Source: Guillardia theta CCMP2712 (Eukaryota > Protista > Cryptophyta). Taken from it: DNA of 64,000 nucleotides. The notes beneath the pieces are model-generated. The model had not been told where the DNA came from. It saw nothing but the letters and a program-made list of their open reading frames with translations, and ran no database searches. Positions 30,301-34,700 of this stretch are shown in pieces; positions within the stretch are counted from its first letter, which is position 1; each line of letters begins with the position of its first letter. The stretch is taken from contig NW_005434672.1 of assembly GCF_000315625.1 (NCBI RefSeq), forward strand, positions 1,023,374-1,087,373, given 5' to 3'. The position numbers and the translations under genes are program-made.

Positions 30301-32739
30301 GTCCGAGGTGAAGGGCTCTGAACAGTCGGTGCAAGATCACCGCGTCCCCCAGCTCCTCTGCTTCATCCTCGCTCTCGGCGTTGCGCGGCGATGCCTCCCA
30401 TTGCTCGTCGAGGGACTTACTGTACTTGAAAGCGACACCGAAGCGGACGGGAAGCTGCTGCTCCATCTGCAGGACAAGTCACAACAAGACGCAGCCAAAC
30501 AGAGCAACAGGGAGAAGAGTACAAGACAAAGGAAGCAAGTGAGACAGACACAAACACGCGAGCAGACGATAAGGGACCGAAGGAGAAGGAGGACCAGGAA
30601 GAGGACGTGAGGCCCAATTAAGAGAACGAGAAGGAAGACGAGGAAGAGGAAACGGAAAAGGAGGAGGAGGAGGAGGAGGAGGAGGAGGAGGAGGAGGAGG
30701 AGGAGGAGGAGGAGGAGGAGGAGGAGGTTGTGGAGGGGGGGGGGGGGGGGCGAACCTGTTCGAAAGCCCAGGAAAGGAAGGTGAGGGACTGCATGTCCGA
30801 CGGGTCTACAAGGAAAATTGCCGTCCAGATGTTCCTGGCGATGAATCGCAGCTGCCCGGGCCAACCTCGCTGGAGGAGAGTGTCAAGAGAACGAGGCCAC
30901 TGCCTGTACATGTCGTCCTTCTCGAGATCTGAAAATCATCGTTGAATGTCAGCCAACGATCAGGATGACAGGAAGAGCAAGGTCAACACAGACTTTACAG
31001 GTCAAAGTCATGTAGAGCATTGTCCACACCATACCCTCAAGTCACAGGTGCAACACAGGAGACAGGCATCAGCATGCACGACCGTTCATCCACATGACGA
31101 AGTTGTCGTTCTTCACGTCAATCTTGAAGGTGCTTCCTCCTCCCTCCATCTGTTCAGCAGGAGCATACAGAATCTTCTTGGTTGAGCGGGAGTCCATTCC
31201 GAGCTGCATGAACTTTTCGATCACGTTGATCTCATGCCTGTTCACCAACAGCCGGTCATTACAAACTCGAAGACCTCCAGGCACAACGAGTCTCTACGGA
31301 CCTGATGAATCGATAAAGGGAAAAAGGATTCATATCGTCTTTCTGCAGCTGTCGGCCATTCACATGCACCTGTAAAATTTCTCAAGTAAGATTGTGCAAG
31401 CACGAAACTGAACAAAGAATGTACTTTTCTTACCATGTTTGCTCCTGGTTGTATGAAGTTTCTGTTGTTTTCCAACTCCGCCCTCACGGATGCGTTCACG
31501 CGCATTCTTGAGATGGAGGAAACCTGAAAAGGTGAAGCTCATCACTCCTTGAACATCATCATCAACGGGTGATGAAAACGTCTATACCACTGCAGGCAGA
31601 TTGTGACTCAGATCGCGTATCAGCCGCAGAGGCTCATCGGCCTAGACTGACGTCAGATGCCAGTCAACGAAATCTTACGACATCGAACCTGGAGGATTCT
31701 CTGCGAAGCTTGAATTCCCAAGTCTTTCAGAGCCCAGACCTTCATCGCAAGTCATGACAGATCGCCCGGAAAGAAGCGAGACAAGCACCTTGATGTCTGT
31801 GCCTTCGTCACTCTTCGCCTCTGACAGGAGGCGATCGCGAAAGGAGAGGAGCTCAACTTCGAGATTCGGTTTCCTCTGCAGCAGAGTCTTGAAATCGAAT
31901 CCTCCGACTTCATCCTCCAAGTCGTCCTCCAAGCTCGACCCCGCCTCCCCTTCCTTGTGCCGGTCATCCACAGCTTTATACTCCATGTTCTTGATCGCCA
32001 ACTCGACGCCGTAACCCTGCAGCAGCATGTCTTGATGCGCCTTCTCCTCCTCCTCCCTCGCCCCCGGCCAGCTGTGGCGAAAAACGTACTTGACATCGCC
32101 AGCAGCAGCAGCCTGAGACAAATACTTGTGGAAGTTGACAAACGCCTGAGTGCCGATGGTAGCGTACAAGAAAGCAGTGGAGCAATGAGAGGGGCTGGAG
32201 GGGGATGGGTAGATATGATCGAACTCTTGAATGGAAGGAGCTGAAACTCCAGCTTTGGCTGGGTGACAGGACTCGATCGCGTCTCTCAAGAGGCTCGGAT
32301 CGCTGACGCACTTCCCCCCGATAAGAACCACCGCGCCATCCTTGTCCTTGATCGAGCATCCGAAATTCAACGCTGCTTGCCACAGCTGCTTGTATGCTTG
32401 CAGCTTCGGGGAAAAATTCCTGATGGAAAGAGCAAACTTGATGAGACTAAGTTGAACATTAGAGACGATCTTGGAGGCCAGTTCGATCGAAGTGTCGTAG
32501 TGCTGCTTGTCCGTCTTCTCATAGATATCGTTGGGTAAGGACTCAACAAACTCCCAAAACTTCCCTTCATCCGCTTTATCCGCAAAGTATTCACTGGCCT
32601 CAATGATCAACGGAGTCGGCGCCCATGGTGCCACAACCGACACATCGACAAATTTGCTCTTGGAAGGAGAAGAGCACACGCTTTGAACAAGCAGGATGAG
32701 GCAAAGGACTATCGGAATCTTCAGTGCATTCTTGGGCAT
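27377..32739 (-). CDS. UGGT: UDP-glucose:glycoprotein glucosyltransferase; multi-exon
   Basis: Signal peptide MPKNALKIPIVLCLILLVQSVCS, LQGYGVELAIKNMEYKAVDD, and the GT24 domain IHVFSLASGHLYERFLKIMM...YIDSDQVVR...NLDQDLPN...QEWLWCETWC. Confidence 0.95.
30660..30750. repeat. (GGA)n plus poly-G tract in a UGGT intron
   Basis: Seen directly. Confidence 0.9.
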
Positions 32740-33540
32740 GGTCTCGCTCCTTGATTGAACCATGCGAGCTGATCTGAGAAGCAACCACTATGCCATCGAC
32801 TCAGGTATTGCTGGGCAAAACATCAGTCGTGGTCAAGGCAACACAAAAGAGCTCGTCAGATATGATAATGCATCTCCCTGACTACTTGCTTCTTCCTTCA
32901 TGCCGATGACACGCTCAAAAAATCATCTCTTAATCGTCTCCCACAACCCTCTTGTCTGTCCTCTGTCTATCCCATTCCCACCACTGCATGTATCGATCCT
33001 ATCATTCATCTCTCAGGGTAAGCTGTCTTCCTTCCCTCCGCCTGACACCACTCCTGGCCAAGCTTCTTCTCTCCCTCCTCATGTGCATGTTACACTCGCC
33101 TGATAGTCCCCTCATATCTGCCTCCCTTCCATCCCTCGCTCCATTCGAAGTCCTTATCCTCTGCTTCCCTGCCATCGTTGTGTCCCTCACTCTCCCTCTC
33201 CTCCTCCCCCCTCCATCTTCTTCACATCCGCTCCTCCTCTTCTCTCCTCCTCTTCTCTCCTCCTCCTCTCTCCTCTCCTCCTCTCTCCTCCTCTTCTCTC
33301 CTCCTCTTCTCTCCTCCTCTTCTCTCTTCTCTTCTCTTCTCTTCTCCTCCTTCTATCCCCTGCCTCAAATCCTCCCATCTCGCCATATCCGCTGCTGACG
33401 AATTCCAGAAGCCATCACGTGAGCCCTCATCCCCTCCTTGCCCTTTCCACCTCGCCAGCTGTACCTGAGGCGGGCTTGTTCTTCATATGAATTTTACAGG
33501 GTTGGCCCGCCGACTCGTGGGAGGCCGTGGGGGGCGGGTA

Positions 33541-34337
33541 ATGGCGATGCGAGGCAACGATGGGCGCGGATCAGGAACATCCGCAAGGCCCCTCCTCCTC
33601 CTCCTCCTCCTCCTCCTCCTCCTCGCTATCAAGATCGATCATACGATCGCTCTTGTATCCTCCTCAAGCATGCCTGCCAAGAGGAGCTCACTGCTGCCTC
33701 GGGAATGTAGCGCTCTCAGACTGACCGGCGGGCGACCCAAGGATGAGGACAGTGATGAGGAAGAGAGCAGAGAGAAGTCGACGTCATCTGCAAGGTCCGA
33801 AACGGCAGAGTCGCTCAGAGAGTCAGCTAGAAGAAGAGCAGAGCGGGCCAAGAAGGCTGGTGATCCGGGAAGGACCAGTATTTCGAGGACATTGAATCGG
33901 GTTTTCTTCTCTATGACCAACAAGTTGGGTCTGACGGGATCATCCACGACTGTGATAAGTAATATCAATTGCTTCTTTTCATCACATCTTGCATGGAACT
34001 CGTGACATGATCACCCAGCCTCGCTCAATCTGCGTACTGACCGCTTACACAGATGGAAGAGTGGTGGTGCGACGTAACATTATTCAGAAGTTCTTTCACT
34101 TCATCTACTTGTTCTTTCGCGCCTTGTACATGTTCTTCAAGACGCTCTTCATGGTACCGTGTCTATCTGTTGCGTGCTCGCCTGGTACTCACTGCATCGC
34201 CGCAGCCCACTGCAAGTTGGAATCCTCAGAAACCTTCTTCGGGAGGAGGGCGCGGCTCCTTCAGCTCGTTACGCGCCAAGGGGGCCAACCAGATGCGATT
34301 AGCCGATCTGCCGCCGATGCCTGGCGGCTGAGGTTAA
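33541..34337 (+). CDS. SELENOK: Selenoprotein K with Sec encoded by in-frame TGA (34329-34331) and a long N-terminal extension; exons 33541-33958, 34053-34153, 34206-34337
   Basis: The spliced product ...TTVINGRVVVRRNIIQKFFHFIYLFFRALYMFFKTLFM|PTASW...GGGRG...LPPMPGG-U-G-TAA parallels SelK (ISNGQVL...FVVLFFKTLL...PPPMAGG-U-GR). A SECIS-like hairpin lies downstream. Confidence 0.88.
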
Positions 34338-34504
34338 GCCCACAGAGATCGAGAGGTGAGAGATATGCCGGAGTGACGTCAGTCTGAATCTTGACGGCAG
34401 GATGGCGCTAGCGGAAGGTGTTCCGCTGACCCTCCTCCTTCTCTGTGGGCGAAAAACTCGGCTCGTTGCAGAAACGATCCCGCAACGACGACATCGTCTT
34501 GTAG

Positions 34505-34562
34505 TCGCCCGCTGACGCGAGCGGAGGCAACCCATGAAGGATCTCCGCTGCTGAGGGTGCGA
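34505..34562 (+). promoter_or_regulatory. Eukaryotic SECIS element (type II-like) in the SelK 3' UTR
   Basis: Lower stem tcgccc/gggtgcga; core cTGAc...tGAg; upper helix gcgagcggagg/tctccgctgc; AA 12 nt after the core; apical cc...gg mini-stem. Folded by hand. Confidence 0.75.
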
Positions 34563-34700
34563 GGAAAGTCCTGCAGCATCAACTTTGTATGTTTGTCGAT
34601 ACTTTCGTATGTAAAGCAAGTACAGACACACACGTTCAAGATGAAAACTATCTTTAATCAACATATCGTTACGAGGGAAAAACACAGGAGCTAGTATAGT

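Follow-up and report, generated by a model that had tools for sequence, protein, structure and literature searches.

A selenoprotein K-like gene of Guillardia theta with a candidate periplastid-type leader ending in a ubiquitin-tail-like box

Introduction

In animals, SELENOK is an ER membrane selenoprotein associated with Derlin and p97. The import machinery of the periplastid membrane, SELMA, is derived from ERAD, and in cryptophytes the ER membrane is at the same time the outermost membrane of the plastid. A SelK-like gene of the cryptophyte Guillardia theta, whose product carries a long N-terminal extension in front of the SelK core, raises the question of where such a protein is delivered, i.e., whether it stays in the host ER or continues into the periplastid compartment (PPC) or beyond. 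A first-pass annotation of the locus had described the extension as a signal- or transit-like presequence of about 135 residues and had proposed that this SelK was relocated to the periplastid membrane, citing the non-aromatic residue that follows the signal peptide. Here we follow up these proposals in a window of 64,000 nucleotides (the whole stretch of DNA analyzed; contig NW_005434672.1, positions 1,023,374 to 1,087,373), to which the coordinates below refer.

Gene structure and selenocysteine terminus

The SelK-like gene lies on the + strand and comprises three exons. Exon 1 (33541..33958) is a single open frame that begins with ATG 33541 and is bounded by a GT donor at 33959; its 139 complete codons, with the one base that it contributes to a codon split by intron 1, hold the whole N-terminal extension, and homologues cover the exon in frame. 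Removal of intron 1 (33959..34052, +; GT...AG) restores the sequence SST-TVI-NGRVVV, as in the orthologues, and the motif NG-R-V-V-V begins at the first codon spanning the exon 1/2 junction, which sets the length of the extension at 139 residues from ATG 33541. Exon 2 (34053..34153, +) encodes this SelK core, which is matched within its own genome at E values of 1e-10 to 1e-14, together with a weakly hydrophobic transmembrane (TM) helix. Following intron 2 (34154..34205, +; GT...AG), exon 3 (34206..34337, +) encodes a Gly-rich tail that ends in PPMPGG, the Sec codon TGA (34329-34331), a Gly codon (GGT) and the stop codon TAA (34335-34337). The segment PPMPGG-TGA-GGT-TAA thus spans 34311-34337, the spliced product ends in PPMPGG-U-G with Sec as the penultimate residue, and the same TGA-GGN-stop arrangement is found in orthologous loci of two other lineages (L019 and L022).

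The G. theta three-exon join was analyzed for hydropathy and charge, and orthologues represented the whole protein in Pfam searches and fold prediction. The Kyte-Doolittle profile peaks over residues 149-174, with a 19-residue mean of about 1.3, i.e., the TM helix is marginally hydrophobic; AlphaFold2 predicts a helix at 134-157 of one orthologue (P0002), comparable to the SelK TM helix, in a low-confidence model. Five of the six full-length Sec-tailed orthologues match the Pfam family SelK_SelG (PF10961) over model positions 6-86 of 86, with scores of 15.8-22.8 bits against a cut-off of 23.3 (E values of 1.5e-4 to 2e-2). When the G. theta exons were searched singly against Pfam, PF10961 was not matched; a weak match of a single exon to FAM176 was dismissed.

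Similar to SELENOK (PF10961), the G. theta protein has a core starting with NG-x-V, a single weakly hydrophobic TM helix with internal charges, and a Gly/Pro-rich disordered tail with a penultimate Sec in a GG-U-G ending. Unlike SELENOK, it adds about 139 N-terminal residues, comprising a cleavable signal peptide, a spacer, the hexapeptide LRLTGG and a new helical domain of about 75 residues; its orthologues fall just under the Pfam cut-off, and its predicted destination is the PPC rather than the host ER (see below). We read the locus as a nuclear gene for a divergent SelK-family selenoprotein.

Directly after the stop codon lies GCCCACAGAG (34338-34347), and the complementary CTCTGTGGGC follows 90-180 bases on, in G. 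theta at 34441-34450; the two 10-base arms do not differ among three orthologues. The stem formed by the two arms closes a structured element of 100-200 bases, which in G. theta constitutes a candidate SECIS region (34338..34450, +) with a fold z-score of -2.6, and equivalent elements are found in the orthologues (L019, 4473-4585; L022, about 634-845). The Rfam SECIS models found no match in the window, in L019 or in L022, a loose search for the pattern ATGA...AA...GA was uninformative, and a custom SECIS motif scan returned one weak candidate only. The element may thus be a non-canonical SECIS.

A second, short SelK serving the host, which the first-pass annotation had suggested looking for, did not turn up: searches of the 87.1-Mb genome (669 contigs) with the core of one orthologue and with a profile built from eight cores both found only this locus, and the gene is therefore single-copy. 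Genome matches to PF10961 itself (L001-L003) were rejected as SelK, being low-complexity Gly/Pro/Arg stretches, and this model missed the true locus.

The N-terminal extension is conserved and translated

The extension can be aligned in frame with at least 12 independent homologues, taken from contigs of transcripts and of genomes; they include sequences of Hanusia phi and Baffinella frigidus, so that the conservation in other cryptophytes that the first-pass annotation had proposed to check is indeed found. That both frame and sequence are kept in so many relatives makes the extension more than a chance occurrence. Mean column identity in two alignments of the extension (A1 and A2) is 41-47%, both contain invariant columns, and the closest protein relative comes from Hanusia phi. 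The orthologue P0002, a spliced contig form with a complete signal peptide, has a genomic counterpart, P0004, in which an intron is read through; P0002 is transcript-level support for the extension, in a relative.

Translation could instead begin at ATG 33913, which would yield a canonical short SelK and leave the upstream codons as a chance frame through a microsatellite, a start that the first-pass annotation had named as refuting its proposal. The poly-Leu stretch does derive from a simple repeat, and G. theta shares with Hanusia a Met just before the SelK core. However, this Met is Ala or Leu in other lineages, which indicates that a short isoform is not a conserved product, and a chance frame is hard to reconcile with the amino acid conservation and invariant columns of the extension. 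In addition, contigs from putative RNA sequencing runs contain 0.51-0.61 of the words sampled from 33400-34700, whereas a transcript starting near 33880 could, by calculation, contain at most about 0.40-0.46 of them, a weak indication that the G. theta transcript extends upstream of about 33880. We regard the downstream start as highly improbable. In line with the first-pass annotation, hydropathy and in-frame homologues indicate that the extension is coding and begins with a signal peptide; on the strength of these comparisons, we take it that the extension is translated.

The part of the extension that follows the leader (see below) appears in few proteins. Its profile, searched against 1.84 billion representative proteins, retrieved only 28, one of which is an unrelated repeat protein matched by chance; apart from that protein, all those read among the 16 weaker or new matches show the same architecture or are fragments of it. 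Pfam yielded no match to this domain, and the ESM Atlas no usable look-alike. A comparison by eye of its basic helix with the p97-binding motifs VIM, VBM and SHP likewise gave no convincing match. By these searches, the post-leader domain is new and confined to this small SelK family.

Anatomy of the leader and the LRLxGG box

The extension opens with a signal peptide (residues 1-37; 33541..33651, +), which consists of a basic n-region, an L11-AIK h-region and a c-region ending in T-I-A, and whose 19-residue Kyte-Doolittle mean reaches 2.4. The predicted cut fits the (-3,-1) pattern T-x-A, in agreement with hydropathy, and the orthologues have ordinary hydrophobic signal peptides at the equivalent place. 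The 11 Leu residues are encoded by a (CTC)11 microsatellite (33591..33624, +; Tandem Repeats Finder: period 3, 11.3 copies, 100% matches) and lead into AIKIDHTIA, with LVSSSS next. The context of ATG 33541 is strong, with A at -3 and G at +4; that of a further in-frame ATG at 33487 is weaker, and a start there would make the n-region 35 residues long. Next comes a transit-peptide-like spacer (residues 38-58; 33652..33714, +) with Leu at +1, rich in Ser and Arg (33% Ser/Thr; net charge +2) and poorly conserved among orthologues. It leads to the LRLTGG box (residues 59-64; 33715..33732, +), which resembles the last six residues of ubiquitin and is the proposed end of the leader.

Beyond the box lie an acidic linker (residues 65-92; 33733..33816, +; net charge -5), whose length varies among orthologues, and a conserved domain (residues 93-139; 33817..33957, +) in which a basic helix, A-x-RRAE-x-A-x-x-AG, precedes YRVFFS-x-TNKLGLTGSST. 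This domain contains invariant columns of A1 and A2; the AlphaFold2 model of P0002, of low confidence (pLDDT 55), has helices in the post-leader segments and no secondary structure around the box. We infer that the segment YRVFFS-TNKLGLTGSS is an amphipathic part of the mature protein. The features listed in the first-pass annotation, i.e., the poly-Leu run encoded by (CTC)n, the HTIA-L junction, the Ser/Arg-rich segment and the charged linker, are thus real. Its description of some 135 residues as signal- or transit-like holds for a leader of about 64 residues; the remaining 75 or so form a conserved part of the mature protein that runs into the SelK core.

The first-pass annotation missed the box, which in our analysis of these sequences is the decisive feature. 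Among the A1 sequences, all 11 that reach this position have LRLxGG, and three further relatives have LPLRGG, IPLRGG or LRMSGG there; the variants seen in relatives are LRLRGG, LRLTGG, LRLAGG, LRLNGG, LRLSGG, LPLRGG, IPLRGG, LQLRGG and LRMSGG. Every orthologue that reaches the N-terminus shows the same order, with a hydrophobic signal peptide first, then a spacer that varies and finally L-R/P-L/M-x-G-G. Even divergent orthologues retain the box, in contrast to the surrounding spacer, which has diverged. Six G. theta PPC proteins, namely ugg-t, EF-1alpha, 14-3-3, RRM1, CyP and Ubc8, which were localized as GFP fusions in Phaeodactylum (the Gould et al. 2006 set), have leaders that all end in xLRGG, and thus have Arg at -3 (PMC12136025, supplement 19). 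The Ubc8 leader ends in IPLRGG, as does that of one SelK orthologue. Similar to these leaders, that of SelK combines a signal peptide, a non-aromatic +1 residue, a variable spacer and a box with GG that resembles the end of ubiquitin; in contrast to them, its box is LRLTGG rather than xLRGG, its cargo is a membrane selenoprotein, and a long uncharacterized domain follows the box. Two proteins of the Thalassiosira periplastid set, Thaps3a_19991 TrxH and Thaps3a_9466, also carry LRGG behind a signal peptide and a spacer (..VLSLRGG and ..IFDLRGG; PMC12136025, supplement 19), so that the motif may extend beyond cryptophytes. A literature search combining RLRGG, plastid and signal peptide found no paper.

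The box was also followed through the G. theta genome. DNA patterns encoding LRLRGG occur 353 times, against 255 for the reversed control; the degenerate LRLxGG pattern shows no excess in the genome (1370 versus 1521 in the control), and only the strict form is informative. Forty true LRLRGG sites were sampled in listing order, and at 24 of them a Met followed by a hydrophobic run precedes the box in the same open frame within 120 residues, compared with a background of 3.6% for the same criterion in the window. One of the sampled sites (L035) is the EF-1alpha gene, in which the GTP_EFTU domain starts four residues after GG and whose leader is that of the EF-1alpha entry in the published set (PMC12136025, supplement 19). 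Pfam searches with the pieces behind nine other sampled leaders gave no match, these pieces being too short. At two sites (L049, G000:C7:207910-208576; L055, G000:C9:1045241-1045907), the LRLRGG leader is followed directly by TM-like hydrophobic segments, which suggests that membrane proteins use such leaders too; both are candidate periplastid membrane proteins. At another site (L045, G000:C6:516238-516904), the protein after LRLRGG starts with MKLFTHNLLASP, which we take to resemble the N-terminus of Trm112; if Trm112-like, it would add a further protein of cytosolic type to those that bear a signal-peptide leader.

Destination of the SelK preprotein

With the leader delimited in this way, the reading that we favor, and hold to be probable on the sequence evidence, is that the gene encodes a SelK preprotein with a periplastid-type bipartite leader that is targeted to the PPC. 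As sequence and homology indicate, the signal peptide would take the nascent chain into the ER. The basic, Ser-rich stretch from the spacer through LRLTGG (residues 38-64) would then act in the manner of a transit peptide and cross the second membrane via SELMA into the PPC, and the leader would probably be removed at or near GG. The mature protein would consist, in order, of the acidic linker, the basic helix, the amphipathic YRVFFS-TNKLGLTGSS segment, the SelK core, the TM helix and the Gly-rich tail with its penultimate Sec. The membrane in which it resides would face the PPC and would most plausibly be the periplastid membrane, with the redox-active tail placed at the membrane surface, and one may speculate that the protein works with the symbiont Derlin/Cdc48, as animal SelK does with Derlin and p97.

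The dimensions and charge of the leader agree with this route. The distance from the signal-peptide cut to GG is 27 residues, within the range of 15-63 found for the validated leaders, and the positive charge of the spacer agrees with rules published for passage across the periplastid membrane (PMC3017844). The residue at +1, which is Leu in most orthologues, is of less help: ASAFind treats F, Y, W and L at this position as plastid-permissive in diatoms (PMC12136025), so that the argument for the PPC from a non-aromatic +1 is weak. The basis that the first-pass annotation gave for relocation to the periplastid is thereby weakened, whereas the PPC itself remains the best-supported destination by virtue of the LRLxGG box. 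Three features call for caution. G. theta has Thr where all six validated leaders have Arg, and the alternation of R, T, A, N and S at -3 among orthologues argues for tolerance at this position, short of proof. Where validated leaders were checked, GG is followed by the mature protein at once (EF-1alpha) or after some 15 residues (14-3-3), whereas in SelK about 75 further residues separate the box from the known domain. Lastly, the TM helix may act as a stop-transfer segment in the ER and hold the protein in the outermost membrane; its passage is nevertheless plausible, because by hydropathy the helix is only marginally hydrophobic.

If such a stop occurred, the product would be a type I membrane SelK of the host ER or chloroplast ER, in which the signal peptide is needed only for a lumenal N-terminus of about 100 residues, the Sec tail faces the host cytosol as in animals, and LRLxGG has another role or none. 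This reading is unlikely yet deserves serious weight: the genome has no second SelK and a copy would be expected in the host ER, a signal peptide combined with a TM helix gives the canonical SelK topology, the neighboring UGGT is an ER protein, and the box of G. theta departs from Arg at -3. It leaves unexplained, however, why the box is kept while the spacer flanking it diverges and why its position is that at which the six validated PPC leaders all end. Moreover, an acidic N-terminus has been proposed to exclude ER residents from the PPC (PMC3017844), and the first residues behind the signal-peptide cut of SelK are basic, not acidic. The weak hydrophobicity of the helix also counts against a stop in the outermost membrane.

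The protein could conversely travel past the PPC, to the plastid envelope, the stroma or the thylakoid, with Leu at +1 substituting for Phe. The retention of Leu in most orthologues and its acceptance by ASAFind would suit such a route, which the other evidence renders improbable: the stromal protein ChlP, also encoded in the window, carries A|F and lacks an LRGG box; the region that follows the SelK spacer is strongly acidic, unlike a stromal transit peptide; and the xLRGG class is tied to PPC proteins. 

Delivery to the PPC, which we continue to favor, would have several consequences. The protein would be the first of its kind in the PPC, both as a selenoprotein and as a SelK-type ERAD accessory, and a candidate for steps at the periplastid membrane that are unexplained, e.g., redox control or Derlin/Cdc48 coupling; a literature search linking periplastid and selenoprotein found nothing relevant. 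It would also mean that the cryptophyte host ER does without SelK, a situation that would be unusual, although not impossible. What is new here is a ubiquitin-tail-like leader ending on a SelK. The protein is also a membrane-protein test case for such endings, and the natural variation at -3 (R, T, A, N, S) should be useful for learning what the presumed leader-removing enzyme recognizes.

A more far-reaching proposal, which we put forward as a long shot, is that SelK serves as an accessory subunit of periplastid import. Its leader would be cut at LRLxGG after import by a ubiquitin-type protease, the new domain would anchor it in the periplastid membrane beside sDer1/sCdc48, and the Sec tail would take part in the redox control of preprotein translocation, with a thioredoxin domain replacing this tail in some lineages. 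The likeness to SELMA is by analogy only, in that animal SelK belongs to the Derlin/p97 ERAD complex ancestral to SELMA and the predicted compartment is shared; a link between the G. theta protein and SELMA is one that we purely infer. If the proposal were true, cryptophyte plastid protein import would depend on selenium.

Thioredoxin-tailed relatives

The replacement of the tail is seen in a group of SelK relatives (P0042, from L067, with P0045, P0047, P0051 and P0053). Similar to SelK, the P0042 group has a signal peptide, an LRLSGG box, the basic helix, a TNKL-ITGAST block and a SelK-like TM helix; unlike SelK, it has a thioredoxin domain (WCGPC; Pfam E value of 4e-25) in place of the Gly-rich Sec tail. 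A search of the G. theta genome showed this form to be absent from it. As far as these sequences go, the tail swap supports the idea that the N-terminal module would tether a redox-active group to the membrane in a reducing, cytosol-like compartment, and the thioredoxin-tailed relatives in turn support a reading of the SelK tail as a membrane-tethered redox module.

Neighboring genes

Two genes near SelK in the window have leaders of other kinds. The UGGT-like gene is on the minus strand and starts at ATG 32739, 801 bp from the SelK start and divergent from it. Its N-terminus (31678-32739) has a plain signal peptide directly before the first domain, Thioredoxin_12 (E value of 2e-38), with no LRGG box, and its product is presumably a host ER enzyme. 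The first-pass annotation had pointed to the promoter region shared by the two genes. The divergent arrangement is present as described, but the gene upstream of the orthologue from Tara data (L019) is patatin-like and not UGGT; the pairing is thus not conserved, and we gave it no weight. The other gene, also on the minus strand, is ChlP (geranylgeranyl reductase), whose first two exons (36482-36435 and 36202-36156) encode a signal peptide ending in TDA, Phe at +1 and a Ser/Arg-rich transit peptide. By its sequence, this leader is of the classic cryptophyte stromal type and provides an internal contrast to that of SelK. Between UGGT and SelK lies a long CT-rich microsatellite tract (33180-33360).
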